Positions 5,626 through 31,700 of a stretch of 32,836 nucleotides of DNA are shown here, piece by piece. Every line of letters begins with the position of its first letter. Within the stretch, counting starts at the first letter, position 1. The stretch lies in NCBI GenBank assembly GCA_024137785.1, contig JAHRHZ010000002.1:5880172-5913007 (forward strand), read 5' to 3'. Position numbers and translations under genes: made by a program. The notes beneath the pieces were generated by a model, which did not search any database, was not told where the DNA came from, and saw only the letters and a list, made by a program, of their open reading frames with translations. This DNA comes from Ginglymostoma cirratum. Taxonomy: Eukaryota.

Positions 5626-6954
5626 TTAGGGAGGCGGAGATGAGCTGTGCTGGTTTTGAGATGCGGTTGGGGGAGGGGAGATTTTGAAGCTTGTGAAATC
5701 CACATTGATACCATTGGGCTGCAAGGTTCCCAGGCTGAATATGATTTGCTGTTCCTGCAGTCTTCGGGTGGCATCATTGTGGCATTGCAGGAGGCCCAGG
5801 ATGGACATGTCATCTGAGGAATGGGAGGGGGAGTTGAAATGGTTCGTAACTGGGAGGTGAAGTTGTTTGTTGCGGACTGAGCGCAGGTGTTCTGCAAAGC
5901 GGTCCCCAAGCCTCTGCTTGGTTTCCCCGATGTAGAGGAGGCCACAACGGGTACAGCGGATGCAGTATACCACATTGGCAGATGTGCAGGTGAACATCTG
6001 CTTGATGTGGAAAGTCTTCTTGGGGCGTGGGATTGGGGTGAGGGAGGAGGTGTGGGGGCAGGTGTAGCACTTCCTGCGGTTGCAAGGAAAAGTGCCGGGT
6101 GTGGTGGGGCTGGAGGGGAGCGTGGAGCGGACAAGGGAGTCACGGAGGGAGTGGTCCCTCCGGAAAGCAGACAAGGGTGGGGAGGGAAAAATGCCTTTGG
6201 TGGTGGCGTCAGATTGCAGATGGCGGAAGTGTCGGAGGATGATGCGTTGGATCCGGAGGTTGGTGGGGTGGTACGTGAGGTGGAGGGGGATTCTTTTTTG
6301 GTTGTTATTGCGGGGATGGGATGTGAGGGATGAGTTGCGGGAAATGCAGGTAACCCGGTTGAGGGCGTTCTCGACCACTGCGGGGGGGAAGTTGCGGTCC
6401 TTGAAGAATGAGGACATCTGAGATGTGCGGGAGTGGAATGCCTCATCTTGGGAGCAGATGCGGCGGAGGCGAAGGAATTGGAAATAGGGGATGGCATTTT
6501 TGCAGGAAGGTGGGTGGGAGGAGGTGTATTCCAGGTAGCTGTGGGAGTCAGTGGGCTTGAAATGGACATCGATTTCTAGGTGGTTACCCGAGATGGAGAC
6601 AGAGAGGTCCAGGCAGGAGAGAGAAGTGTTGGAGATGGTCCAGGTGAACTTCAGGTTGGGGTGGAAGGTGTTGGTGAAGTGCATGAAGTGTTCGAGCTCC
6701 TCGTGGGAGCATGAAGCGGCGCCGATACAGTCATCAATGTAACGGAGGAAGAGGTGGGGTTTAGGGCCAGTGTAGGTACGGAAGAGGGATTGTTCCACAT
6801 AACCTACAAAGAGGCAGGTATAGCTTGGGCCCATGCGGGTACCCATGGCCACCCGCTTTATCTGTAGGAAGTGGGAGGAATTGAAAGAGAAGTTGTTGAG
6901 GGTGAGGACGAGTTCGGTTAAGCGGATGAGGGTGTCAGTGGAGGGGGATATCAC
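5626..6954 (-). CDS. Penelope-like reverse transcriptase (C-terminal part) plus GIY-YIG endonuclease, 5'-truncated
   Basis: Open 442-codon frame with RT motifs VAMGTRMGPSY and FLRYIDDC, the linker YLEYTSSHPPSCKNAIP, the Cys motif PCNRRKCYTC and the endonuclease motif NVVYCIRC...LLYIGETKQRLGDRFAEH. Confidence 0.92.
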   Translation of the reverse strand: MISPSTDTLIRLTELVLTLNNFSFNSSHFLQIKRVAMGTRMGPSYTCLFVGYVEQSLFRTYTGPKPHLFLRYIDDCIGAASCSHEELEHFMHFTNTFHPNLKFTWTISNTSLSCLDLSVSISGNHLEIDVHFKPTDSHSYLEYTSSHPPSCKNAIPYFQFLRLRRICSQDEAFHSRTSQMSSFFKDRNFPPAVVENALNRVTCISRNSSLTSHPRNNNQKRIPLHLTYHPTNLRIQRIILRHFRHLQSDATTKGIFPSPPLSAFRRDHSLRDSLVRSTLPSSPTTPGTFPCNRRKCYTCPHTSSLTPIPRPKKTFHIKQMFTCTSANVVYCIRCTRCGLLYIGETKQRLGDRFAEHLRSVRNKQLHLPVTNHFNSPSHSSDDMSILGLLQCHNDATRRLQEQQIIFSLGTLQPNGINVDFTSFKISPPPTASQNQHSSSPPP

Positions 6955-7281
6955 TCAGTTCGCAACAAACAACTGCACCTCCCAGTCTCGAACCATTTCA
7001 ACTTCCCCCCCGCCCCCCCATTCCTCAGATGACATGTCCATCCTGGGCCTCCTGCAATGCCACAATGATGCCACCCGAAGGCTGCAGGAACAGCAAATCA
7101 TATTCAGCCTGGGAACCCTGCAGCCCAATGACATCAATGTGGATTTCACAAGCTTCAAAATCTCCCCTCCCCCAACCGCATCCCAAAACCAGCCCAGCTC
7201 GTCCCCGCCTCCCTAACCTGTCCTTCCTCTCACCTATCCCCTCCTCCCACCTCAAGCCCCACCCCCATCTCCTATCTATTA

Positions 7282-7381
7282 NNNNNNNNNNNNNNNNNNN
7301 NNNNNNNNNNNNNNNNNNNNNNNNNNNNNNNNNNNNNNNNNNNNNNNNNNNNNNNNNNNNNNNNNNNNNNNNNNNNNNNNN
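7282..7381. other. Assembly gap (100 N)
   Basis: Run of N inside the inverted Penelope tail. Confidence 1.
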
Positions 7382-12303: not shown

Positions 12304-12355
12304 ATGCTCCTTGTTATTTTGCTGCATGTTTACTGTGTGTTCATAGTCTCCTCTG
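12304..12355 (+). CDS. MHC class I-like gene, exon 1 (signal peptide)
   Basis: aacATG...MLLVILLHVYCVFIVSS+G|GTaagc is a hydrophobic 17-aa leader ending VSS, with a strong phase-1 donor that joins in frame to alpha1 (G+AT=Asp). Confidence 0.8.
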
Positions 12356-13029
12356 GTAAGCAATTCAAACAGCTGGTATATGTGGATAGAATTGAAAGGT
12401 ACCTGGAGATTTCAGTGTCAAAGGTTCAGGTTTTGAGTGTTTGATTGTCTTGGGTGCGTCAGTGATCTAGGGCAAGGATTCTCCTTGTACCAGGAGAGAG
12501 AGTCGCAGCGAGAAATCGTGATAAAGATTTGTTTTCCAAGCTCATGATCCAGACAGTTATTTATGGAGATACATCTGTTGTCAAAATGCACATGCAAATA
12601 ATGATCATTGTGTAATGAAGTCTTACAGCTGTAATTTGGAACTGGAATGAAAAGAAAGTAAGGTGAGGGGGGAAAGTAACTGGGAATGCTAATGGAATTT
12701 AAAGAGAAGAATGACACTGGGAAGTAAAAGGAGAGAAAGTGTTAAATGGTAAAGCCTGGGAAAGAAATTTTGCACCACAATTAGGTGGTTATTTAAGCAT
12801 TTTTTTTCATGTAAAGGGCAAAATCAGCATCTGAACCTGAACTGAGGAACAGAAGTGAAACCTACCCACAACTGTGGTGTTGAAGTGGGCATTGCAGGAA
12901 GGTGTGGGGGGTGGAATTAGAGGCGTGGGACATTTAGGCCGAAGGGAGGGGGAAAGGGGTGCATTGCATTTCAGTAGCAAGTGCAGCGAATTCTTTTTAT
13001 GCGTGAATTTTATTCTTTTGGCTTTATCT

Positions 13030-13470
13030 ACACTGAGAACTGTGGATGTTCAGTCGCTTAGTATGTTGAAGGCAGAAGTCAACAGATTTTTAGCTATACA
13101 TGTCATAAAAGAATAGTCCTGGGTAATGGTGTCTAAGTAGGTGATCAGCCATAATCTGGAATGGTGGAGCAGCATTGAGGGGCTGATGGGTCTCTCCTGC
13201 TCCGAAGTCTCTCCCTTTGTTTTCCACTCCACATTTTGCTTCCTACCAATTTGCTGTTTCTGGTGGTGAGGCTAGAAATCTGCCACAAATGTTAGTGATT
13301 GTGTAACAATGCATAAATGGGACTTTGTCTGATTTACAGGAGGTGATGAATGGAGTCCCACAATGCTCTGTACTGGAGCTTCGACCTTTCACTTTTGACT
13401 TAGGTGAAGGGAATGAAAGTGTGGTAGCTAAACTTGCAAGTGACACAAAGATAGGAAAGTATGATGTGAA
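13030..13470 (+). mobile_element. CR1 LINE fragments
   Basis: CR1 tail (gatcagccataatctggaatggtggagcag) and RT remnants (ggagtcccacaatgctctgtactgg; gctaaacttgcaagtgacacaaagatagg). Confidence 0.7.
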
Positions 13471-13835
13471 GAAAGTATAAGGAGTGGACGCTTCCCAGCC
13501 CCTGAACAATGTGGCCCATGGCGGGGAAGTAAGGAAAATTGCATTAGATGGCTAGCAAGGAGCTTCTCAATGGCAAGAGCAACTGGTCCCACTTTCAATC
13601 CAAGTGCTGAAGATTGAATGGTGAGAGGCCTACACACTATTATCGTATTATTAGTTTATTTCACTCCATTATTATGCAGTTTGGCACTCTCCCATTTGAT
13701 GGATAGAAACTCGACAATGACAATGACAATGATTTATAACTGATTGGATTTATTGTAGTCACATGTACCGAAGCACAGTGAAGTTTTGTTTTGTAAGAAG
13801 CTCAGGCAGATCATAGTAAACAAGGACATACAGAT

Positions 13836-14037
13836 AGCAAGGTGTAGAAATGGAGGAACACAGCAGGTCAAGCAGCATCAGAGGAGCAGGAAGGCTGACG
13901 TTTTTGGGCCTAGACCCTTCTTCAGAAACCGAAACGTCAGCCTTCCTGCTCCTCTGATGCTGTTTGGCCTGCTGCGTGCATCCAGCTCTACACCTTGCTA
14001 TCTCAGATTCTTCAGCATCTGCAGTTCCTACTATCTA
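13836..14037. mobile_element. Short Penelope-derived insertion (second subfamily) with inverted halves
   Basis: Tail sequence present in both orientations. Flanked by the 14-bp direct repeat AAGGACATACAGAT (13822-13835) / AAGGACATTCAGAT (14038-14051). Confidence 0.85.
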
Positions 14038-16113
14038 AAGGACATTCAGATCATGGGTTTTTAGTAAGAGTGAAGCATACAGATTCCAGCTTCACAGGAG
14101 GTGCACAATTCCCAACACAAAGGACAGAACAGATATCTAGCAGCTCCAGCTTGCTGAAAGCTCCTCTAAATGTTTGTCTTGGACTCACTTGATAGGCATC
14201 AAATGCACGGGCCCCCATCTGCTGAGTTTGATATCGAACTAGTATGATCCTCGCTGGACCCTGATGGTTCATCTCTGCACTTTCTGCACTTTAACGTTGC
14301 ATTTAGAATGCACCAACACCTTTCTTTGGAAGGCTACTGCAAGGACACATTGTGTGTAGGGATAGCGCCCATCATATCGACTGGACCTGGCTGCATCTGA
14401 GGGTCTGCTCAATTGTTCTGTTAGCAGTCATTCACTTTGTGTCTGCTTTGATGTCGTTGCCTTGCATTTCACCCTTCAGCTGCACTTTTGAAGGGCCCAA
14501 TTCTACTCCTATGTCTTATGGTCTTATGGGTTACACATGTTACTGCATGGCACCATGCTATGTCAATTTCACAGCTATGGCATGCACCAGCAGACCGCGC
14601 AGCAAACACGCTGTGATTGCTTTAGCCAAATAGTTATGTCTGAAAGTTTAAGGGGAGTGGTCCTCAGACACTCGAATGTGGTTCGGGAGAAGCTGTCTAT
14701 TCGCAGTTCAAGTACTTGGGCATGGTCAGTCATCCACTTGGGGCTGTCAGGGTCAGGGACTCTGAATTGCTCCAGTTTGGGAGGTGGCCCATTGTAAGTC
14801 CAACAGGTTTATGTCTGTGGATTCACTGTAAGGCATTTGGGGAACGTCACAGAGATCATTCAGAGCCTGGTCAGTAATCATTTAGGGCTATTCCTTCAGA
14901 TCAGTAAGGGGAATAGGCCATAGTCAGTCCTTGGGTTCAGTATAATGAAAATGATGTGGTGGAGGGAAGCTATCAGGGGACCCTACTTTGAGAGGGAAAT
15001 GGGAAAAGTTAATTCTGAGGATTGGAACCAAGGGGACAAGGAGGATGAAGGGAGGAAATGGGACACATTAGGAGGGGAGAACTATCATGCAGAGGAGGAC
15101 ATGGAATATCGTGGGAGACGTGTTATCCAACAGTAGCTGTCAATATGGCCTTGATGAGAGGACTGTGGAGCATGATAGGGGGCTGGCCCAAACTGTGGGG
15201 ACATGGTTCAAGCAGTAAGGATGATAGTTGCAGACATATTTCCAGGCAGTAGATGGAAACAAGTGGAGGGTGAGGGCTCAATGGGCTGTCTAGGAAGTGC
15301 CAGGAAGAAAGCAATATGGAGACTCTGTAGAGTTGGGGGAGCGGGCATGGGGTAGGCCTCTCTTGATTCCCATATTGAGCCTGCAACTCACTGTGCCAAG
15401 CTGTTCCACATTCACCCGATTCCTAATGTGAACTGCAAATGGAAAATGGCTGCAACCACAGCCAGAGTGGGTGGAATCAGTGTTTTGATTCTGTTCTAAC
15501 ACACAATGGTCCATTTCTGAGCAATGGGTGGCCTTTCAAGGGTAAATGCATTAATCATGCACTTGCAGAGTACAGGTATATCTGTATTCACAGCATCAGA
15601 CATGTGAAATGCAAGCAAAGTCCAATTGTGTGGGGTTCAAATCCCAGTCACAAGCAATCCTGATCATATCATTTCTGACTGAATACAGCCATCTTTATGA
15701 AACAGAAGTAATCAAGGGGATGTTAAAGGTGGTACCTACAGATGACAAGCTCGAAGCTAATGTATGATCTAATAGGCTACACAAGGGCAAGCAGGTAACT
15801 CTCTCTCACCCTGAACTGTAAATACACTCCAGTATGATCATACATGCAATTTGCCCTTTCCCAGATGGTGTAGGGTTGGGAGCACAATGTATCAGTACTC
15901 ATAGAGCATTTATAATCTCCTACTATCTCTTTGCTTCATTCATCTGAGTAAGGTCCCATGTCAAAATTTAATATACAGGTATTCTATGATCTTCCTTGTT
16001 GTAGTCCTCCATGCCTCCATCTGTGAAGCTAAAGCATCATTTAATAGCGACTCACACCACTGAAGGACCTGTTCTGTTTCTGATATTGTCCAGTTTCATT
16101 AAAACTGTGGCTG

Positions 16114-17150
16114 ATGGATCAAGCTAGGGCAGGGGTTATAGTTGCTATTGCTGAGGTGTCTCTGTGGTGCAGAGAGATTGAGGAGGAACAGATACACCAG
16201 CAAGCCCAGGACAAGCAAGAACCTCCAGGGGCTGCTGAACAGCTTCCAGATGAGCAGTCCCGATACGCAGGAGATAGAGAAGGGCCAGAATTGTTTGTCC
16301 TTGTTTCTATTTGCTGCAAAATGTGGAAGGTATAGTGTTGCTGCAAGGATGAAGCTGTCCCTTGATGCTCTCATAGAACTTTTCCAACTACTGGAGCAGG
16401 ACCTGGAGGAGGGCTGGGCAGTCATCCCATCCTGGAGGCCATCTGGCCTCCTTTGAAGCTCCATTGAATGTTGATGCAGCTGGTTCCTTCCAAGGAGTAC
16501 TGGGTCCCGATTTGAAGCCTTTCAGTCCTCAATCCACAAATGGATGAAGGCCATTCCTATGCAATTTGTACCAGATCACAATCTTTCGTCTTATTTCCCC
16601 ATGACTAAGTCAATTCCGCAGCCTACACAATGGGCCTTCCTGAAGTGCAACACACAATAGGCTGTACATATGTCATGACTGTGTTAATCAATTGAAAAGG
16701 CTTCTAACTCATTGAAATACAAACCATCTGTAGTCCAGATATGCTGGAACCAGCTGTGGTGCCTTGAGAACTTTTATGTTCCCGCTGCATTTCAATGGCC
16801 AGAAGCCTGGCAAGAATGGTTACCGAGAGACAAGGGCAACCCACTGTGACCATGACTGATGTCTCTATTAAGCAAACTTCTGACTGAGGTGAAGACAAGA
16901 TATGATACAGCACACTCTTCAACAAGGGCCATGATGGAGCACACAATAGGCCTGCTGAAGATGAGGTTCCACTTTTAGGATCAGCCTGGGGAAGCCTTGA
17001 GGTAGCTCTGGACAGCATACATTGCTTAATCCTGACATGCTGTGGGCTGCAGAACTACAGCAGGCTAAAAGGAGATGTGTTGGAGGCTGAAGATCTGGAA
17101 GGATAGCAATTGTCATCTAAGAAGGAAGATATGGACTTTGAACAGGAGGA
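16114..17150 (+). mobile_element. Decayed PIF/Harbinger (HARBI1-like) DDE transposase
   Basis: Fragments in the correct order: LSLDALIELFQLLEQDL, AAGSFQG, QSSIHKW, GLPEVQHTIGCTYV (cf. GFPxVxGAIDCTHV), LIN*KGF, WLPRDKGNPL*P*LM (cf. WLLGDxGYPLxxWLM), TRAMMEHTIGLLKMRF, TCCGLQN. Multiple stops and frameshifts. Confidence 0.85.
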
Positions 17151-17549
17151 AAATCACCAACTGCGGTGATTGAGCAGTATTGGGTGCTACCAGCCAAACA
17201 GGATTTAAATGACACCCAGTTCCAATAGACGTGAGCTGGGTGCAGTGATCAGTCAATGATTGTAAATTTGTTGAAGCTCAAAAGGCAAGCAATTCCTATC
17301 TCTTCCAGGAGTCAGATGCAACTTCTGCTTGTTTGATTTCTGTTTGCTTTTGCTATTACTGAAAGAAGTGAAACGTCTGAATCATTGAAATCTTTTCCTT
17401 AATCGTCCCACATTCAACAATATAAAATAATGGGCAACACTGGGCATTGGGAGAATGATAGCGCTGAATTAGAAAGGACATTAAGATGGTATGTGGTAAA
17501 GACAGATAAGCTGTGGGTGGTTAAACAGTGGTAGATATACAAATGTACA

Positions 17550-17830
17550 CTTGGAGTCATAGGGATGTACAGCACAGAAACAGAACCTTTGGTCCAACTC
17601 ATCCATGCCAAACTGATATTCCAAATTAATCTAGTTCCATTTGTCAGCATTTGGTCCATATCCCTCTAAACCCTTCCTACTATTATACCAACCTGATGCT
17701 TTTTAAATGTTGTAATTGTACCCGCCTCGACCACCTCCTCTGGCAGCTCCTTCCATACGTGTAGCACCCTCTGTGTGAAAAAGTTGCTCTTAGGTCCCTT
17801 TTAAATCTTTCCCCTTTCACTTTAAACCCT
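17550..17830 (-). mobile_element. CR1 LINE 3' end
   Basis: Reverse complement matches the + strand CR1 tail at 28770-29020. Confidence 0.85.
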
Positions 17831-18199
17831 GCATATTAGTTGTGTACTCCCATGTGGCCTGAGCAGTTTATTAGTTGCTATCCTACAATGTGCAAGGTAA
17901 AGGGGAACTCTGGACTGCCAGCAATTGACCCGTTGGGCCACAAAGAATTCAATTGCCGTGGACCATGAGATATCCTGGCAGTGGCAAATACCTCTGCTTA
18001 TGGTGAGTGGGAGAATAGAATGTGCTGGGTGCTGTAAGGATGTGGTGTGTAGCTAAAGAGGTGAGTTTGGGACAAAAGCTGCATAGCATGCAAAACAATA
18101 CTTTCATTGTATACATTTGACAATAGTAAATCAAAACCTGCTAGGCTTCGTGGGGCATATACCTAAAATGGCACTGAGCCAATTTCAGGTAATTTCCAG

Positions 18200-19830
18200 C
18201 TCAAGGAGTTTGTAGAAGGATGCAAATTGGTTAATTGAGTAGGTAAGAATCTGGCAGAAGAAGTATGTCATTAGAAAATGTGAAATTGTTCACTTTGGCA
18301 GGAAAAACAAAAAAGGAGGGAATCACTAAGACACAGAGTGACTACAGAATTCTGAAACATGCAGTGACTTTGATGTTCTTATGTATGACTGACAGAAAGT
18401 TAACATGCAGGTACAACACATAATTGAGAAGGTTAATAGTCATGATTACATGAGAGACTAAACATATGTGTTGTGCTTCAGGTATACAGAGCTTTGGTGA
18501 GACCACATCTCAAATACTGTGTGTTGTCCACTTAAGGAAGGATGTAAATACATTGGAGGGGGATCAGACGAGGTTTACTACATTGATACCTTGAATGAGC
18601 GGCTTGTCTAATGAGGCTAGATTGGACTTGGGTTTGCTTTGACTGGATATTTACATATATTGCAGAAAATGTTGTTCTTCCTTGTCTTCAACACCCCATT
18701 CCTTTTCAAAACGCATCAACTCCTTTCAAACCACATTTTAGCTGTGATTTTCCTCACTTCTTTAAAGTACTCACGGGCCTCCTTGCTTGCCAGCTCTGCA
18801 TCCTGTCCAGTCTCATGTTCCTACTTACTATTTTCACTGCTCCAACTCTGGGTTATGCTTCCCCCACCCATCGCTATTAACTTTGTTCTGGTGGTTACAC
18901 CTCCATTCTCTCATGTTCCTGCCCTCCTTCAATACATCTGTCTTGAGTCTTCCTTCCTCCAGAATACAAAATCGTGGACCATCTTCTACCTGACTGCCCT
19001 TTTGTGGTTTCCTTTCTGCGCAGCTTCTCTGTGTACACAAAGAATGGTGTATTAATGTGACCCGTTGCATACAATCAAAACATGTCTCCCTTGAGCCTTT
19101 TCCATGTTACAGTTATATGGTTGCAGATCTTTAACTTAACCACATGTATTCACCTTGGATCCATAACTCTCAAACAGACACAGCAGGTGGTAAAGAAGGA
19201 AAATGGTACGTTGGCCTTCATGGCGAGAAGATACGGGAGCAGTGATGCATTTCTGCAATTGTAAAGGGTTGGTGAGACCACACCTGGAGAGTATTGTGAG
19301 CAGTTTTGATCACCTTATCTGAGAAAGGACATTCTGGTTATGGAGGGTATGTAACAAAGGTTTACCAGCCTGATTCCTGGGATGGCAGGACTGACGTATG
19401 AAGTGAGACAGGATTGGATAAGACTATATTTCCTGGAGTTTAGATGATTGAGGGAGATCTCTTAGAGAACTATAAAATTCTAATAGGACCAGGCAGGGTA
19501 AATGCAGGAATGGTATTCTTGATGACTGGGGAATACAAAACTAGGGGTCACAGTCTAAGAATATGGAGTAGGCCATTTAGGACTGAGACGAGGAGAAATG
19601 TCTTCATCCAGAAAGTGGTGAGCCTGTGGAATTTTCTGCTACAGAAGGTGGTTGAGACCCAAATATTGAATGTTTTTCAGAAGGATTTAGATGTATTTCT
19701 GAGGGCGAAAAGGATCAAACGGTATGGGGAGAAAGCAAGAACAGAGTACTGGAGTTGAATGATCAGCCATAATCATATTGAATAGCAGCGCAGACTCAAA
19801 GGGCCGAATGGCCTACTCCTGGTCCTTTTT
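18200..19830. mobile_element. Cluster of CR1 LINE fragments (+ strand at ~18200-18640 and ~19170-19830; probable - strand piece between)
   Basis: Translated remnants LVRPHLKYCV, GDLLENYKIL, TRGHSLRIWSRPFRTETRRNVFIQKVVSLWN; tail gggccgaatggcctactcctg. Confidence 0.8.
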
Positions 19831-20599
19831 ATACAAACTCTTTGTGTAACAGAATGCTCTCAATCTGTTCTCAAACAAGTAACTGACCCTCCAGCTTCAA
19901 TTGCTTTTTGCAGAGAATGTGTTGCAGATTTCTAGTCTCCTTAGCATGAGGAAAAGCTTTCTAAAATCATTGGTGCCTTATTCAGGCCTCACCCTCTTGA
20001 GAAATTTCTTTAAATTTGGTAACTGGATGTTAACTTCCCTGGAAAATAAGCAGCATTTATTACCCACTGCTATAATTTTCGCTCTATCCATTCTACCAAA
20101 TTCTTAATCACCTAATTTACAGAACCAGTCACACTTCATTCCTGAAGGGAGAATTAATCTAACCTGTACAACCTAGGCTCATATTTTAATGCTCTGGAAT
20201 CAAATCACTTCACAAAAGGAATGAAGTATCTCACAAGACACCTGTGATCAGACAGCGGATGTATTTCAATGGCTCTGGGGCCTTTCTTGAGGTTGTGACA
20301 GGTCCCATATAAATGTGAATTATTTCTGAACCTCCTCCTGCTACACTAGCAGGGTGACACTGAAATTTGATGTAGATTCTAATCTTGTCCTTTGTTTCCT
20401 TCTTCAGCTCACAATGAACTTTGACACTGTCTAGTCTGTTGGTTAGGCCCAAGAATTTTTTCTTGTTTCTGAGCAATTACTGTCATTTATTACAGTTTCT
20501 GAATGAGTAAAGGCCAAAATGAACTTGTGTTTCTGCTTATGAAGGCAATTAGCTGCTGCACTGACAATACTTCAAGCAGTGTCAGAGATAATCATCTTA

Positions 20600-21852
20600 A
20601 TATGTATGTTTAATAAATGGGCATATATTGGACAATGTCATACTGCAATTTGAGTTTGGAACTTTGTGTGTTACTAATTAACTTGCTTTTCTGTAGCCAT
20701 GTTGTGAGCTACATTGGCAGGCTAAATGCTTTCTATTTACTTTAGGAAGTTACAACCTATTAAGATTGGCAATTGTACCTCAAAGCTTATGAAATACATA
20801 AAGGTCGGGGTTTTTTTAAGGTGATCAGAGACTTAACTTAAAGGGAGACTTATGGTCTCGGTTCTATTTGGAATCGGGTGGTTCTTTGATGGAGATGGTT
20901 GCAAACAGCAGTGCTCCTTCAAAAGGGAGAGTATAATGAAGCCGGATTACCATACAGTAATGAGTTAATGATAATCCCAAACCAAATATGTTGGGATAAA
21001 ACCCTTAAGAGACTCCTTGAAGCTGAGTATATTTAAGCTCAGGTGTATGTTAGCTATGAGCTCCAGAAAAAGCTATCAATGTCTCTAGTCTAGGAGTTAA
21101 GTCAGTTATCTTAAATCTATGTAAGTATTAGGGAAACAGATTCTGGTTTGTGTACTGTACAAGGGTTGCTGTTCAGCACTTCCAATGGCGTTGTTTGTTT
21201 TGTGAAACTTAGAATCCCTACAGTGTGGAAACAGGCTATTCAGCCCTATGCATACTGATTCGCTGAAGGGCATCCCACTCAGAATCACCTCACACCCTAT
21301 CCCTGTAACTCTGCATTTCCCATGGCCAATCCACCTAACTTGCACCTCCCTGGACACTATATGGGCAATTTAGCATGGCCAATCCACCTAACCTGCACAT
21401 CTTCGCACTGTGGGAGGGAACCAGAGCACCTGGAGGAAACTCTCACAGATGCAGGGAGAATGTACAAACTCCACACAGATGGTCGCCTGAGGATGGAATC
21501 AAACTCGAGTCTCTGGCATTGTGAGACAGCAGTGCTAACCACTGAGCTACCGTGAAAGCCACCCTGAAAGAAGCATTAATGGGGTTATAGTTTTACAGTG
21601 TGTTAAAAACTCTGAATTTGTTTTATAAGTAAATAGATTTATTGGTTTATTCTATTTTGCCTCTGTTTAATTTGCATAATAAACCTCTGTTGTTTTGCTA
21701 TAACAAATTTGCAACATTTCATATTTCTGTATTTGTGAGAGACCACCTCAATTACCTAGAATGAAACAAAAATATGATCTATCAAGTCAGATCCCAGTCC
21801 ATGATCTCAACTGAGATCTGACTTGTCCAATAATAACATCAGCTGGGATCAC
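20600..21852 (+). mobile_element. Probable solo LTR interrupted by a SINE (boundaries approximate)
   Basis: TATA-like tatttaa at ~21029, AATAAA at ~21678, and an end (gatctgacttgtccaataataacatcagctgggatca) resembling LTR termini recalled from shark genomes. Confidence 0.35.
21210..21555 (-). mobile_element. HE1-type tRNA-derived SINE
   Basis: Reverse complement starts cacggtagctcagtggttagcactgctg (A box) and has a B-box-like gagtttgattcc. Colinear with the copy at 26440-26785; CR1-like tail. Confidence 0.9.
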
Positions 21853-22488
21853 CTGTACCAAACTGTGGTGGTAGAATCATCAATTTTTTTAACATGACTG
21901 TCTGGTTTCCATTGCAAGAGAAGACAGGAAATCTTGGTTTCTGGATCCCTCACAGTCAATATAAATCCTATAAATCCCACCCTATGTTTGTTTTAATGAT
22001 GGTTAGTTCCTGCCCTCACTGACAGTTTAGACATTTTCATCAGAGCCCTTCAACTATCTCAGTCTCACTGAAAAGAATCTCAATCTGCCCTCCTTGCTCA
22101 GGCCCACCATGCTCAGGAATGACCTGGGCAAAAAATCTATCACCAGCTTTCAATCACCTTGATATCCTCCTTAACAAGGTACAAAATGATCAAATATTCA
22201 AACTATGCTCTTTGGAAATCTTTATAAGAATGTTGTGGAGTAGACTTAACGTGGACTTAAACTGAGCGTAAAATAGGAAGGAACACACACGAGGTGGGGT
22301 TCAGACAGGAAAATGGAATCAAGTCATGCTGTTATTGATTAGTAAGCAGTTGGAGGAGCAACCTGGCTTATTCCTGTTTTCTTTTTATATTCAAGTTGAA
22401 CATTAATCTGTTATTCTCACAGTTATACTCACAGTTATTTTACAATCAATGACGATTATAGGACTGTTTCCTCTCTGTAATCCTTCAG

Positions 22489-22749
22489 ATTTTCACGCCC
22501 TCACATTTTACTACTTACTGAACCTTGGCCAGGCTGAACTGCCTGAGTACAGTTTGTTGGCGATGCTAGATGACTACCACATAATTTATTTCGACAGCAC
22601 ACTGGAGTTGTGCGTACCCAGACAACACTGGATGGCACAATCCTTCCCAAAGGATCACTGGGCCATGATGACTATCACAATGGCAGGATTACACGGTCTT
22701 GTAAAAGGAAACATTGAGATATTTTACCAACAACACCATGGAGGTTCTG
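22489..22749 (+). CDS. MHC class I-like gene, exon 2 (alpha1 domain, 87 aa)
   Basis: ccttcAG|AT...TCTG|GTaggt, 261 nt, phase 1-1. Translates DFHALTFYYLLNLGQAELPEYSLLAMLDDYHIIYFDSTLELCVPRQHWMAQSFPKDHWAMMTITMAGLHGLVKGNIEIFYQQHHGGS, with class I hallmarks H3, LPEY, MLDD, YFDS, PRxxWM and W60. Confidence 0.95.
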
Positions 22750-23085
22750 GTAGGTGTTTTCACAACAACGGTGAAGTAACTAATTTGTATTGAGACAGTG
22801 TCATAGTAACATCCTGAACTGTTTCACACAGGGAACCGGTAATGGAATTAGCTGGATGTTGTCACTTTCTGGGAATAACGCAGAAAGCATTAGTGCACAG
22901 CAAAATCAATGAGGTGATTCACTTGCTTTTGTTTGCGTACAAGAAGTGAAACCACCAGCATCTCAGTAGCTTGATTGAACAGGGAGAACCTTGTTTTAAA
23001 TAATCTATATGATGGCATTTTTGACAAGGCAGCATTCAGTATTGCCTTTCAGACAGTGAAGCTCTCTTCAGTACTCCACCTCGAA

Positions 23086-23420
23086 AAGTGCAACACTCAT
23101 TCAGTACCTTACTGTAATTCTGAAATTGCAGCACTCCCGAGCGCTGTTCATTTCACAATGCAGCATTCCGTCAGTACTGATCTATGGACAGCGCAGCACT
23201 CCCTCAGTACTGACCGTCTGACAGTGCGGCACTCCCTCAGCACTGACCCTCTGACAGTGCGGCACTCCCTCAGCACTGACCCTCTGACAGTGCGGCACTC
23301 CCTCAGCACTGACCCTCTGTCAGTGCAGCACTTACTCAGTGCATTTAGCCTGATAGTGCAGTTCTGTCTCAGTGCTGATGCTCCAAGGGGCAGTACCCAT
23401 CAGGACTGACCTGCTGATGA
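23086..23420. repeat. 33-bp minisatellite CTGACAGTGCGGCACTCCCTCAGCACTGACCCT
   Basis: Three perfect copies at 23218-23316, with progressively degenerate copies on both sides. Confidence 0.95.
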
Positions 23421-24762
23421 TACAGTGCTCAAAATACCATCAAGCTGACATACCACTTTGGTGTGGTGACAACATCAGCTTAATGTCATTGCAGATTTAT
23501 GTAATGATCACCAAAGAATTTTGGCATGATTTCAAAAGTGTAGGAAGTGAAACCTTGAGGAACTTCTTCTGGCATTGTCATAAAGATTTGCAGGAGTTGC
23601 AGTAGACCACAATGGTTAATATCACCAGTTAGTGCCAACCTTTGAGATATGCCAGATCCTTTTTTAACATTTCAATTCACAAACATTGAGTATCTCAGCA
23701 GCTTATTCTGGAGATCAATTGTTCTTTGTGTTCAGATGTATGTAACTTATTGATCTATTGGATTAAACAGCCTGTTTTGTTGATGTAAATATTAAGTCAC
23801 TTACAGCTATGATAAGAGTTGAGTACCACAGAATAGTTTAAAACTTGTTTTTGGATGGATACTGGCATTTATTGCACATCTCTGCCAAACATTAATGCCC
23901 ATGAGAATGTAGTAAAACATGTGAATGCAATCTCAATTTACAACTGTTTTGAAATATAAGAACTGAATAAAGTCTTCCAGCTTTTCATATCTTATCTGCC
24001 ACTCATGTAGATCCATGCTTAACCTGTTTTTGACACTCATTGACTTGACTTCACTTTCTACTCTTTGATACCCTCACTGAACATAATTGTTTCTGTCTCA
24101 GAATTTGAATATCTGATTGATCTCCAATGGGAGAAGCCATTTGGCTCATCTGGATTGAAGTAAATATTTATGTTCCAGGTTAGTTTGCTCCAACTCAAGT
24201 TCATCTCACCTGATCAGCATATCCACAGATTCCTTCCTCTGTCTTGTGTTTCTCTATTATAATGTACCCCTACTAGTCATCTCAACCACTTCCAATCATC
24301 ATGAACTTCAGCTTCTAAATCACAATTGGATTTAATAAATACTATCTTAGAGAAAGCAAGATCTCCACCTTAGGATGTACCATCTTTGTGAAAAACTGCA
24401 TCCTGGTTTCAGTCCTCAATGACTTAGTTTGAATTTTGATCTGACGCCTCTTATCCTTGAGTCTGCCACCAGAGGAATGCAGCTTCTCTGGAATTACTTG
24501 CATGAAGCTTTCCACCTCGGTCAGTCTTCACCTCTTTCTCCTCCTTTAAGGTACCACTGGAAACTGACTTCTTTACAACAGGCGTCCAGTATCCTCTGTG
24601 GAGCTTGGGAGAGTTGGGGAGGGAATCTCGGTAAATCGTACTCCTGAAGTACCTTGGGACATTTTGTATTGAAATGGCCATAGAAATATAAGCTGTTTTG
24701 TATCTAGCTGACTGAACCCTTTTCACATTGTGAAATGATTTGAATGTTAATGCTCTCTTCAG

Positions 24763-25038
24763 GTCTTTTCTTCATCCAAGGAATGTGTGGCTGTGAATTG
24801 CACACTGATAATTCCACTGATGGGTTTATAAAGCTCGGATATGATGGGCAGGACGCATTTGTTTTCAATAAGGATAGAATGAGTTGGATTGCATTCAATC
24901 CAGAGTTCCAAGCATTAGCAGACCGGTTGAATCTCCACACCTTCATGAACAAATACTTCAAGACTCTGTTGGAAAAGGACTGCGTGAAAGGGCTGCTGAC
25001 ATACCTTAAATGTGGCCAAGCAGCGCTGCAGAGGACAG
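24763..25038 (+). CDS. MHC class I-like gene, exon 3 (alpha2 domain, 92 aa)
   Basis: ctcttcAG|GT...ACAG|GTatgg, 276 nt, phase 1-1. Translates GLFFIQGMCGCELHTDNSTDGFIKLGYDGQDAFVFNKDRMSWIAFNPEFQALADRLNLHTFMNKYFKTLLEKDCVKGLLTYLKCGQAALQRT, with Q96, GC101, YDGxD, W133, C164 and YLxxG..LQRT. Confidence 0.97.
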
Positions 25039-26439
25039 GTATGGTTCAGGATCAGGTCTTAGATGAAAACTGTGCCAGTGCCTTGTGCAATTCATAGATC
25101 ACCTTTCCTATCAATTTTGTTCATTGTAGATTTTTCAACTTTCATCAATGTCCAATTATTGAGCCCCCAACTCCAAGAATTCTTTATATCTGATCTTTAA
25201 TAGAAAGCAGCAGTGCCTGGGCCATGCCTTGCTTTTTCTTGGTAAAGTCACAATTCATGTCTGCATTTTTCCTTCGATTCACAATAAAAACTAGCAGAAG
25301 TCATGCCCTTTCACTTTGTATTTAGTTTCAATCATTCTTTTCCAAAGGACCCACTTGTCAGTCCTTTTTTTTCACGACTTGTTATTACACACTACTTGTA
25401 TAGGTGGAACCTGAATTGAGAATCTCTGACTCAAAGAAAGGCACATTATCACTGCACCACAAGAGCCCCTTTGTCCCTCCTTCATTTATTTACTTTAGTT
25501 TATTCTGTTATTCTTTCATTCAGAAGTGCTGACCTTATATTTTCCCCATCAACATATTGCCCATGGTATCTTTTTGTCATCTATGAAACACTAGCGGAAA
25601 ATCACCTGTTTCCCAATTAATTAATTTACATGGTAAGCTCATTAAGGGCAATGCAAAGTCAAAGCTGAGGGAGAGATTGTGGGAGGGGCTGGTGGGCTAA
25701 ATCATAATGGACGTGGAGGGGAAAATATAGCATCACACCAATTTCAGTGCCCACTTCTCTCTAAAGGCATCAAGACGGACACTGTGTGCTGTCTCTCCAA
25801 TGACACCCAGGCTTGAACGTAATGGTGGAAGAGGAGCAGGCAGTCAGCAGAGATGACCCTCTCCACAGCCCGCTGCCTAGATGTGTTTATAGACAGCCTG
25901 GCCAAGCCCACAAGTAGACCCACAAAGAGGTCCTCCTTTCTGCCAACTGCCCAAAGATTAGGAGTGTATGTCCCTTCTTTATATCTACAGTCTCTTAATA
26001 AACGAATTAACATAAATCTCCTCCTTAACTTCTGGCTATATTAGCAATGGTGATAATAGGGCTGTTGTGGTCTCATATTTGTGTCTCTACATCAGGGGCC
26101 TAAGTCTTGGGATCACATCTCATCAGTTCCAAAAGTGTGCATTAAAATCTCGGAATAGGTTGACTAGAAGATATCTGTGATGTGATAATGGTTGCTTTAT
26201 CCAATTGTAATGAAGATAATACTGCCTTTCAGTCCTTTTCAAAACTTAAAAAGAGATGGACAGCTCACATCAACTGCATCATGGAACGAGTGGTGTATTA
26301 GCAGAGCCAATTGATTCTTAATTTATATATGGTGGGCAGGCTTCCAATTTTAGCACCAGTGCAAACTTTGTATTGTGGAGATGAAGGAAGGTGATAGGAT
26401 GGACACTCGCCCCCTTTTATGTGCCCTCATAGCCCAGTG

Positions 26440-26785
26440 GCAGCATGGTGGCTCAGTGGTTAGCACTGCTGACTCACAGCACCAGGGACGTAGGTTTGAT
26501 TCTCGCCTTGGGCGACTGTCTGTGTGGAGGCTGCACATTCTCCCTGTGTTCCTCCGAGTGCTCTGATTTCCTCCCACAGTCCAAAGATGTACAGGTTAGT
26601 TGGATTGCCTATGGTAAATTGTCCATAGTACGAAGGGATGTGCAAGCTAGGTGGCTTAGCTATGGTAAATGCAGGTATTCAGGCATAGGGTAGGGGATGG
26701 GTCTGATAAGATGCTCTTTGGAGCGTCAGTGTGGACTCAGTGGGCTGAATAGTCTGTTTCCACACTATGCAGATTCTGTTCTGTG
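26440..26785 (+). mobile_element. HE1-type tRNA-derived SINE
   Basis: gcatggtggctcagtggttagcactgctg (A box), ggtttgattc (B box), body ttcctcccacagtccaaagatgt.caggttag, CR1-like tail. Confidence 0.9.
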
Positions 26786-26949
26786 ATTGGATGACATTAC
26801 ACCCATGAGGGGCATGTATAATGTTGCCCAGCTTGTTGATGACTACTGTGTCAAGTCTCTTCATAATTATGAAACCGTCTAGATTATCCTCTCACCTTCC
26901 TCTTTCATGACTGTCATTTGTCAGCATCAGTCCAAAGCCTTCATAGAGG

Positions 26950-27245
26950 CATAGAAACAGACAACAGGAAATCAGGAGTGGGCCATTTGACTCTTTAAGG
27001 CTGCTCAACCATTCAGTATAATCATGGCTGATCACCAACTTAGTACCCGTAATATGCCCAAAATACTTTGACCCTTTTCACCCTAAGAAATATAACTAAC
27101 TCCTTCTTGAAAACATTCAATGAATTGATCTTAAATGCTTGCTGTCGCAGAGAATTCCACAGGCTCATCAATTTCTGAGCAAAGACATTTCTCCTCACCT
27201 CATTCCTGGATGGCCCACCCTGCATTCTTGAACTGTGACCTGTGT
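26950..27245 (-). mobile_element. CR1 LINE 3' end
   Basis: The - strand translates GHSSRMQGGPSRNEVRRNVFAQKLMSLWNSL, followed by the CR1 tail. Confidence 0.85.
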
Positions 27246-27364
27246 GAGCTGAGGATTTTGATAATAAACAGGGAAATTTTAAAAAATTAAAAAGAGAATT
27301 TTCCACAAATATACAAGTGAAATCTTGTAGATGCCAGGGCTCTTGTGGGTTAGGGAGAAATGAT

Positions 27365-27700
27365 GGCCATGTGGTACTATCGCTGGACTATTAATTCAGT
27401 GACCTAGGTAATGTTCTGGGTACCTGGATTCAAATCTCGCAATGGTAGAATTTGAATTCAATTATTAAAAAAATTTGGAATTAAGAGTCTAATGATGACC
27501 ATTGCCAATTGTTGGAAAAACCCATCTTGTTCACTAATGTCCTTTAGGGAAGGAAACTGACACCCTTACCTGATCTGGCCTACACATGATTTCAGACCCA
27601 CAGCAATATGGTTGACTCTTAACTTCCTTGGGGGCAATTAGAGATGGACAAGAAATGCAGCCTAGCCAGGGATGCCCTCATCATGTGAATGTACAAAGAA
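27365..27700 (+). mobile_element. tRNA-derived SINE (second family)
   Basis: tRNA-like head (gtggtactatcgctggacta...ggattcaaatc), conserved-looking core ggaaggaaactg...ccttacctgatctggcctaca, and an A-rich end. Confidence 0.7.
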
Positions 27701-27821
27701 AGAAAATGTCTGAACTAAAAGGGGAAGGGCCTGGAAATTCTGATGTGTAAATTTGGAGAGAGGGAAACAGGTTGGTGACTTTTTTTTATCAGTGATTTTA
27801 GTCTTTGGTTAACTCTCTCAG

Positions 27822-28094
27822 TCAGCCCTGAGGTGTTCATTGGGAGCAGGACTGATGGTGAGCAAGCCCTGAGACTCTCCTGCCTTGTTCTGGGCTTTTA
27901 TCCTGGGGATATCGAGGTGACCTGGCTGAGGAATGGACTGGTGGTCCTTGACGTTGAATCCACTGACGTGCTCCCCTATCAAGATGAGACGTATCGGGTG
28001 ACGAAGACGTTCAAACTCAGTCGAGATGATGGGGAGAGGTACTCCTGTCATATTGAGCATACCAGCCTCATACAGGAGCTCAATGTACCCTGGG
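27822..28094 (+). CDS. MHC class I-like gene, exon 4 (alpha3, C1-set Ig domain, 91 aa)
   Basis: ctctctcAG|TC...TGGG|GTaagt, 273 nt, phase 1-1. Translates VSPEVFIGSRTDGEQALRLSCLVLGFYPGDIEVTWLRNGLVVLDVESTDVLPYQDETYRVTKTFKLSRDDGERYSCHIEHTSLIQELNVPW, with LxC..GFYP..I.V.W and YSCHIEHxSL. Confidence 0.97.
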
Positions 28095-28280
28095 GTAAGT
28101 ACCAAGTTGACTGGTGCAGGGTTCTTCCTGTAGACCTGGGTGCTCAGCCCAGTTCGGAGAGAACTTGTCTCATCCGTCATGGTCAGTGATGGTAAGATTA
28201 TTTTCTAAAAGATGTGAGACCAGTCAAGTCACTATAGTCTTACCAGACCATAAGGTTGACCTCTCATTACTGACTGGTGA

Positions 28281-30942: not shown

Positions 30943-31559
30943 TAATTGCCTTCCCTTGACTGATCCCTCTGATGTTTTAATGACTTCCTTCTAGGCCCAG
31001 AGTTTCAATGAATAAACCACTCTTGGTTTGGCTATGGCACTATCAATATTATTCCTTTGCTATCTTGAAAGAAAAGTTGGTTTCAAGAATAAATGGTCCC
31101 TTGTATTGTTTAACTAACAGTTTTGTCTCCTTGTGAATTACCTACAGCTAGACGTTCGAAACTGTGTTGCTCTGTAAGTTAATTTATTAAATTATTGTTT
31201 TTTAAACCCTTTCAATAACCCTATGTCAATCCCATTATGCCATTGCCCCACTTTTTCCCCATAGTCCTGTACCAAGACCAAAGTTAATCCTACATTCTTG
31301 AAAGGTGATACATAAATTCAAATGCTCTTTCTGATGGTGCATGTAGAGCAGTAGTTTGCAGTTTATTGAAGTACACCATAAATTTAATTTTAAATTACTA
31401 TTTATTGATATCATTTTAATGTGAACTGTATGTGTCAACAGAGCGCACATCATATGGAGCCATTAAGTTGGGAACTATGACCGGAGCATCAGCCATCTCC
31501 CTCACTCTTTTTGGGATCATCACGGGAGTTGGTTTCTGGAGAAAGAGACAGAGTGGTCA

Positions 31560-31700
31560 GCCTAACAGAGACCAGCAGGTGTAGTCGGAGAGCAACAGAG
31601 GCTGGCAGAGACCAACAAAGGTTAACAGAGACAGACGGAGATCAGCAGAGACCAGCAGAGTATATCAGAAATGTTCAGAGAATAACAGTGACCAGCAGGT
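31560..31700. repeat. Degenerate short tandem repeat (cagagaccag-like units)
   Basis: Recurrent CAGAG at ~10/20-bp periodicity. Confidence 0.55.

Follow-up and report, generated by a model that had tools for sequence, protein, structure and literature searches.

Whether the presentation of lipids and small molecules, as by CD1 and MR1, is as ancient as the presentation of peptides is an open question about how adaptive immunity evolved. Two lineages of shark and ray major histocompatibility complex (MHC) class I molecules with apolar grooves, UFA and UGA, are known so far. UFA was described as CD1-like and mapped to the MHC-Ib cluster (Verissimo et al. 2023, PMC10751288), and a 2025 review reports, with crystal structures and mass spectrometry cited as personal communication, that UFA and UGA bind CD1d-type lipids (PMC12562908). 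Here we describe a further member of this elasmobranch class I group, encoded in a 32,836-nucleotide stretch of the Ginglymostoma cirratum genome (GenBank assembly GCA_024137785.1, contig JAHRHZ010000002.1, positions 5,880,172 to 5,913,007 of the forward strand), hereafter called the window. The gene is real and intact, and encodes a membrane-anchored, nonclassical MHC class I molecule. Together with its orthologs it makes up a lineage of its own, the sister of UGA. This lineage is annotated in the databases and, as far as we found, has not been described by name. The lineage is the third of its kind, lies next to UGA, is older than the split between sharks and rays, and has a groove that is more apolar and better conserved than that of UGA. 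We hold with moderate confidence that the molecule may display a conserved hydrophobic non-peptide ligand, likeliest a lipid, at the cell surface to a receptor of innate-like lymphocytes. The existence of a third lineage suggests that non-peptide presenters diversified early within the primordial MHC, and the gene offers a defined starting point for eluting ligands, solving the structure, and tetramer experiments.

The coding region extends from position 12304 to position 31584 of the window and comprises five exons with 334 codons, which specify a type I membrane protein. The exons, and a tandem repeat that overlaps the end of the last one, are as follows (a slash marks a splice border):

12304–12355, forward strand: exon 1, start codon and 17-residue signal peptide MLLVILLHVYCVFIVSS; 52 nt, ATG ... 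CTG/GTAAGC, phase 1 end.
22489–22749, forward strand: exon 2, alpha1 domain; 261 nt, TTCAG/AT ... TCTG/GTAGGT, phase 1.
24763–25038, forward strand: exon 3, alpha2 domain; 276 nt, TTCAG/GT ... ACAG/GTATGG, phase 1; contains the cysteine pair C101–C164, a further cysteine (position 99), and a glycosylation sequon, NST.
27822–28094, forward strand: exon 4, alpha3 immunoglobulin C1-set domain; 273 nt, CTCAG/TC ... TGGG/GTAAGT, phase 1.
31442–31584, forward strand: exon 5, connecting peptide, transmembrane helix LGTMTGASAISLTLFGIITGVGFW, and tail; found by tblastn with ortholog P0001.
31563–31698, forward strand: 20-nt tandem repeat with 6.8 copies, overlapping the last tail codons and the 3' region.

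A preliminary description of the window, made by reading the DNA without database searches, had proposed an open frame of 287 codons for the leader and the alpha1, alpha2, and alpha3 domains. The lengths of its four exons (52, 261, 276, and 273 nt) and their GT-AG phase-1 borders were all reproduced, and the in-frame translations of exons 1–4 contain no stop codon; the frame is thus open, but the gene does not end at 28094, as the description had it, and continues through the fifth exon to 31584. Exon 5 was located by a tblastn search of the window with the skate ortholog P0001, which produced a match at 31432–31659. The acceptor CAACAG/AG at 31442, as read from the sequence, carries on phase 1, and the exon is read as E-RTSYGAIK-LGTMTGASAISLTLFGIITGVGFW-RKRQ-SGQPNRDQQV followed by the stop codon TAG at 31582–31584. 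The segment RKRQ is a basic stop-transfer signal, and the cytoplasmic tail has 14 residues. NCBI models the Stegostoma ortholog with the same C-terminal ending, ...FWRKRQIGQSNRDQQM. Weak donor sites at 31552 and 31555 could give rise to one more splice. A secreted molecule is ruled out by the transmembrane exon, which was found through homology. In the ortholog from the sawshark Pristiophorus (P0100), the equivalent 20-nt repeat is read as coding sequence and yields an RDQQR/AET-rich tail of about 90 residues. The tails of the orthologs range from 14 to about 90 residues, and their length seems to be set by the place of the first stop codon within the repeat.

The leader MLLVILLHVYCVFIVSS closely resembles the leaders annotated for the orthologs from Heptranchias (P0102) and Pristiophorus (P0100), MLLVTLLNVYCVP.VSS, and this resemblance supports the placement of exon 1 so far upstream, with a first intron of 10 kb. 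Reading of the upstream segment 11800–12303 revealed no convincing class I promoter elements. The alpha2 domain matches the Pfam family MHC_I with an E-value of 2e-15, and the alpha3 domain matches C1-set with 7e-17. The alpha1 domain reaches an E-value of only 0.0036 against MHC_I, which is under the curated cut-off of the family, and the term "highly divergent", used in the preliminary description, is therefore apt for alpha1. The locus has the features of an MHC class I heavy-chain gene: one exon each for the leader, alpha1, alpha2, alpha3, and transmembrane parts, phase-1 introns, an MHC_I platform, and a C1-set alpha3 domain. Both the C101–C164 pair and the alpha3 cysteine pair, which are hallmarks of class I heavy chains, are present.

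The gene is apparently transcribed. Contigs from four of the six sequencing runs matching the alpha2 exon were compared with positions 22400–28200 of the window. Runs X1 and X5 come from a single study of organism A, which is the same organism as that of the window, and their contigs apparently behave like cDNA. The matching pieces, 22574–22724 (alpha1 exon, X1), 24840–24990 (alpha2 exon, X1), 24762–24871, 27953–28094, and 27819–28094, are confined to exons and do not differ from the window at any position. One X5 contig begins at the 5' border of the alpha2 exon with a 2-letter overhang, and a 304-nt X5 contig spans the whole alpha3 exon without a mismatch and carries 10 extra letters at its 5' end and 18 at its 3' end, which do not match the introns. 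The X1 and X5 pieces end at the predicted borders and then continue for 2 to 18 letters that are incompatible with the introns, and the depth of these runs in unique intron bins is zero. The breaks at the borders and the non-intron overhangs support the junctions 22749>24763 and 25038>27822, as well as a splice out of 28094. The join 28094>31442 is predicted from the homology-based placement of exon 5. The search for spliced transcripts, which the preliminary description had put forward as a check against a pseudogene, thus identified exon-only contigs ending at exon borders, at a depth of 2–5 in runs whose type is not on record. Contigs from runs X2 and X3 (organism B) cross the introns at a divergence of about 3.5% (22425–28128; about 96–97% identity) and represent the orthologous locus of a close relative. 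The alpha1 exon of organism B has at least four differences, of which two are silent and two replace residues (in the exon frame, codon 3 changes from A to V and codon 59 from M to T).

Database searches indicate that the gene is no one-off divergent gene and has orthologs across sharks and rays. A comparison of its alpha1 domain with 1.8 billion representative proteins yielded 82 matches at E <= 0.001, one of which, the skate protein P0001, is 73% identical. When P0001 was used as a query, 12 proteins scored 368–563 bits, the tandem two-gene model P0109 scored 313 bits, and the next full-length non-ortholog scored 196 bits. The orthologs are from Leucoraja, Pristis, Mobula, Hypanus, Pristiophorus, Heptranchias, Scyliorhinus torazame, Stegostoma, Hemiscyllium, Chiloscyllium, Mustelus, and Cetorhinus. 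A single ortholog is the rule, although an additional partial model is present in both Pristiophorus and Leucoraja (P0110 and P0111). The zebra shark protein as a query retrieved the same set of orthologs from a large protein collection, and no protein from the species of the window. The alpha1, alpha2, and alpha3 domains encoded in the window are 96.5, 94.5, and 90% identical to those of the zebra shark (Stegostoma) ortholog P0104, and 87, 87, and 80% identical to those of the Hemiscyllium ortholog, values in keeping with an orectolobiform shark.

Within the MHC-Ib cluster, the lineage sits immediately upstream of UGA. In the skate, the ortholog and a UGA gene carry consecutive accession numbers on one 127-kb contig. 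The sawfish ortholog LOC127585976 is flanked by b2m/brd2 on one side and col11a2/rxrb on the other; three more class I genes come after it, the first of them 42 kb downstream. The supplement of Verissimo et al. 2023 (PMC10751288) gives all four sawfish genes no label beyond "MHC-Ib". In the literature searched, we found neither a published name for the lineage nor a primary paper on 9CH4, UFA/UGA/UHA, or shark CD1-like structures.

Maximum likelihood trees were calculated separately for the alpha1, alpha2, and alpha3 domains, with branch support from the Shimodaira–Hasegawa-like approximate likelihood ratio test (SH-aLRT). The orthologs of the window gene form a clade in all three trees, with SH-aLRT support of 100 (alpha1), 98 (alpha2), and 91 (alpha3), as do the UGA sequences, with support of 88, 99, and 100, respectively. 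The two lineages are sisters in the alpha1 tree (support 86), and in the alpha2 tree they group together with three elephant-shark genes (support 90). These three Callorhinchus milii genes, P0129, P0138, and P0144, are named MR1-like, ZAG-like, and F10-like. The alpha2 tree hints at a superlineage of the window lineage, UGA, and the elephant-shark genes that may be older than the split of chimaeras and elasmobranchs. UFA and a large shark-only clade without the alpha2 disulfide (C101, C164) are placed elsewhere in the trees. The preliminary description had left it undecided whether the gene belongs to a described chondrichthyan lineage of the UBA–UFA series or to an undescribed one, and had proposed per-domain phylogenies as a check. 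In these, the gene does not group inside the clade of 9ch4 (UGA) or that of 8gm8 (UFA); it forms a clade of its own together with its orthologs, and the features ascribed to UDA, UEA, and UCA do not fit it.

The groove was analysed using the numbering of HLA-A2, which was transferred by gapless alignment of alpha1 and alpha2 to the classical-type shark protein P0116 (Y7 Y59 R84 F123 T143 K146 W147 Y159 Y171). The nine classical anchors that were scored are Y7, Y59, R/Y84, Y/F123, T143, K146, W147, Y159, and Y171. At these positions, the window gene encodes F7, H59, Q84, A123, L143, R146, L147, L159, and Y171, exactly as listed in the preliminary description, so that one of the nine anchors is kept. 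This rules out a classical class I molecule of the shark UAA type and agrees with the earlier claim that peptide termini are not handled in the classical way. All 12 orthologs have the same anchor residues as the window, except that W147 is kept outside Orectolobiformes, and they retain one or two of the nine anchors. The replacement of tryptophan by Leu147 (24927–24929) is specific to orectolobiform sharks; the other orthologs have W. The residues previously assigned to the groove (M63, M67, L70, L73, V74, I80, F81, I95, G97, C99, I114, L116, F156, and G167), as well as those attributed to the fold and to beta2-microglobulin contacts (H3, Q96, D119–G120, D122, C101–C164, and the alpha3 cysteine pair), were found at their positions without exception.

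The mean Kyte–Doolittle hydrophobicity of 44 groove positions is 1.44 for the window gene, with 5% of the positions charged, which bears out the apolar groove that the preliminary description had claimed. The ortholog lineage has a mean of 1.28 (range 1.04–1.47; 5% charged), compared with 0.58 for the UGA lineage (11% charged) and −0.14 for 16 classical-type sequences (15% charged). Among 83 class I sequences, the window gene ranks second in groove hydrophobicity. The string of groove residues is near-invariant from sharks to rays, and small residues are kept at G69, G76, G97, C99, and A123. Cys99, which is located on the groove floor, is kept in all 12 orthologs. The N86 glycan site is lost, and the NST site in an alpha2 loop is conserved in the lineage. 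Shark-to-ray identity is 70% in alpha1, 75% in alpha2, and 58% in alpha3 for the window lineage, and 61, 64, and 60%, respectively, for UGA. A platform that is conserved above alpha3 is the pattern of the monomorphic presenters MR1 and CD1d; classical class I molecules have the opposite pattern.

The closest solved relative of the gene in all three domains is 9ch4 (E-values of 1e-21 for alpha1, 2e-17 for alpha2, and 7e-17 for alpha3), an entry released on 2026-03-18 with the title "Crystal structure of shark nonclassical MHC class I, UGA". The ortholog P0105, the domains of which are 87, 87, and 80% identical to those of the window gene, was folded as a stand-in using AlphaFold (predicted local distance difference test score of 84). 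The model has the class I fold, with Z-scores of 27–29 to class I structures, and superimposes onto 9ch4 with a Z-score of 29.0 and a root-mean-square deviation (rmsd) of 1.8 Å over 268 residues with 40% identity. When the UGA-type protein P0004 was used as a query, a separate UGA lineage was recovered in sharks and rays, with one to three genes in each species. UGA genes co-occur with orthologs of the window gene, as in Stegostoma (P0186 and P0104, respectively) and Pristis (P0191 and P0098). Since the two lineages coexist in one species, they are paralogs, and the window gene is a tandem paralog of UGA that originated before the split of sharks and rays.

UGA (9ch4; orthologs P0004, P0183–P0195, and P0086) resembles the window lineage as its closest solved relative, its sister in alpha1, and the product of the adjacent gene in skate and sawfish. 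The two share the helix motifs TIT.AG.HG..KG and MN.YFK.LLE.DC and residue L159, both have lost T143, and both are present in sharks and rays. They differ in that UGA keeps three to six of the nine anchors, including Y59, K146, and W147, compared with one or two in the window lineage. The groove of UGA is less apolar (0.58, compared with 1.28–1.44) and twice as charged, it has F99 where the window lineage has the conserved cysteine, and the N86 glycan site, lost in the window lineage, is kept. Membership of the window gene in UGA is ruled out by the separate clades in all three domain trees, the co-occurrence in the same species, and the identity of 37–49% per domain.

UFA (8gm8, titled "shark nonclassical MHC class I, UFA", which was reached via the model of P0033; relatives P0030, P0033, and P0096) is likewise a shark and ray nonclassical class I lineage from the same MHC-Ib cluster. 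Its likeness to the window gene is weak in alpha1 (E-value of 6e-10), and its alpha2 domain has no BLAST match to that of the window. UFA-type proteins end with a hydrophobic C-terminus without a cytoplasmic tail, whereas the product of the window gene has a basic tail after its transmembrane helix. Membership in UFA is ruled out by the separate clade, the lack of a BLAST match in alpha2, and the different C-terminus. UDA reportedly keeps eight of the nine anchors and occurs also in chimaeras; the window gene, with one anchor of nine, is set apart from UDA by the anchor count. UEA is said to be a large multigene family restricted to sharks, and UCA to occur in dogfish only. The window lineage has mostly one gene per species, is also present in five rays and skates, and lies outside the large shark-only clade, and it is distinguished from UEA and UCA by copy number and taxon range.

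The NCBI annotation of the orthologs in 12 sharks and rays is "MR1-like", a label that can be traced to a strong alpha2 match and to the top structural matches. MR1 is the best non-shark match of the window alpha2 domain (87 residues aligned without gaps at an E-value of about 1e-15), yields the best Foldseek E-values for the ortholog model (2e-29, 33% identity), and has, like the window lineage, a platform conserved above alpha3. However, its rmsd to the ortholog model is 3.1 Å, compared with 1.8 Å for UGA, and its likeness in alpha1 is weak (2e-5). The residues K43, R9, S24, Y62, W69, R94, I96, and W156 of MR1 correspond to C, Y, L, M, L, G, C, and L in the window, with alpha2 positions taken from the gapless alignment and alpha1 positions counted by hand on MR1 numbering. 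Apart from K43, these residues and Y152 build the ribityl and aromatic cradle of MR1. Y152 is the only MR1 ligand residue in common. The position of K43, which forms a Schiff base in MR1, is occupied by a cysteine in the window (22611–22613; position M45 of HLA) and by Ala, Thr, or Ile in other orthologs; the cysteine was gained in orectolobiform sharks. The FNKD stretch, which raises the score of alpha2 against MR1, is specific to orectolobiforms, and most other orthologs have FDKD, with FDKE in Pristis. An ortholog of MR1 is ruled out by the absence of the MR1 ligand residues save Y152, and this residue comparison shows the NCBI label to be misleading.

CD1 and the window lineage are alike in having an apolar groove, lost peptide anchors, a single-copy gene, and a conserved ligand platform. 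At the sequence level, a specific kinship with CD1 is not seen. The CD1-type Pfam model PF16497 scores 29 bits on the window gene, below its cut-off of 35, compared with 57 bits for MHC_I, and there are no CD1 structures among the top 50 structural matches of the ortholog model, the backbone of which is closer to class I and UGA than to CD1. CD1 molecules hold lipid in a deep hydrophobic A'/F' cavity, and CD1b, CD1c, and CD1d sample lipids by means of endosomal sorting motifs. A search of the ortholog tails for YxxPhi or dileucine sorting motifs found none. The sub-threshold PF16497 score, the lack of a CD1 structure in the top 50, and the lack of a sorting motif speak against assignment to the CD1 family. 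The likeness to CD1 is functional at most and confined to the apolar groove.

We propose that the molecule functions as follows. The conserved class I fold and beta2-microglobulin-contact residues would allow the heavy chain to pair with beta2-microglobulin, as is also suggested by the kinship with UGA and UFA. Replacement of the residues that clamp peptide ends would leave no classical hold on peptide termini. The groove of apolar and small residues, near-invariant in sharks and rays, may form an open cavity for one hydrophobic ligand. The ligand would be shown at the cell surface by a transmembrane-anchored, probably monomorphic molecule to an innate-like lymphocyte receptor. Judged from residue composition and from the relationship to UGA and UFA, binding of a lipid or another apolar ligand is plausible. 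Several points weigh against this proposal. The claim that UGA and UFA bind lipids is a personal communication cited in a review (PMC12562908), and the ligand class of UGA may not transfer to a lineage that is only about 40–45% identical to it. Large apolar side chains could fill the groove instead of lining a pocket, the tail encoded in the window lacks an endosomal sorting motif of the CD1b, CD1c, or CD1d kind, and the depth of runs X1 and X5, for which the run type is not on record, is only 2–5.

The groove could instead present hydrophobic peptides, or acylated peptides or amino acids, and not free lipids. Class I folds with apolar pockets that act in this way are known from chicken (YF1*7.1) and macaque (Mamu-B*098). 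The closest structural neighbours of the P0105 model after UGA are avian class I structures (Z-scores of 26.8–27.5), and the neighbours include YF1*7.1 bound to N-myristoyl or N-palmitoyl ligands and Mamu-B*098 in complex with a lipopeptide. In its overall backbone the model follows class I and not CD1, Y171 is retained, and W147 is retained in most orthologs. However, eight of the nine residues that contact peptide termini are replaced, just 5% of the groove positions are charged, and a groove that is near-invariant between sharks and rays argues for one ligand type and not for a peptide repertoire. We regard peptide or acyl-peptide presentation as unlikely. The bulky F, L, M, I, and W residues, which are numerous in the groove, could also pack the helices and close the groove, leaving a molecule without a presented ligand, the surface of which acts as a ligand or receptor like those of HFE, FcRn, MIC, and ZAG. 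HFE (E-value of 1e-11) and zinc-alpha2-glycoprotein (1e-10) are indeed among the better sequence matches of alpha2, but the conserved small residues G69, G76, G97, C99, and A123 would leave room in the groove, lipids have been reported in both UGA, the sister lineage, and UFA, and the platform is more strongly conserved than alpha3, as in MR1 and CD1d. We consider a ligand-free molecule improbable to a similar degree.

The chance that the gene is a recently inactivated or otherwise non-functional copy is close to negligible. The cDNA-like runs X1 and X5 have a depth of only 2–5, and a large protein collection holds no protein for the gene from the species of the window, but the five exons are open and have canonical splice sites, the domains are 90–96% identical to those of the zebra shark ortholog, the residues of the fold and the two disulfides are preserved, and there are contigs that look spliced. 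Display of a hydrophobic non-peptide ligand, the function that we prefer, can be extended to a bolder proposal, for which we see a slim chance: the gene would represent a third ancient ligand-presenting lineage of sharks and rays, without a published name, in which Cys99 covalently tethers a small apolar or electrophilic ligand that is recognized by innate-like T cells of its own. If true, tethering by Cys99 would parallel the use of K43 by MR1.

The window contains several repetitive elements in addition to the class I gene. Upstream of the gene, a GC-rich block with strong GC skew includes a 442-codon open frame at 5626–6954 on the reverse strand, which encodes a GIY-YIG nuclease domain (Pfam E-value of 2e-5) typical of Penelope-like retroelements. 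A partial duplicate of this frame is located at 6833–7216 on the forward strand, and an N gap at 7282–7381. Intron 2 contains a 33-nt minisatellite with 4.6 copies at 23155–23339. The summed contig depth of the minisatellite exceeds one million in DNA-like runs, which indicates that its unit is a very abundant genome-wide repeat. The segments 26280–26667 and 27444–27637 in intron 3 and the segment at about 21100–21550 also have a very high depth, and many contigs are broken at their edges. Translations of these segments resemble the cores of tRNA-derived short interspersed nuclear elements (SINEs), and the high-depth intron stretches are probably SINE copies.

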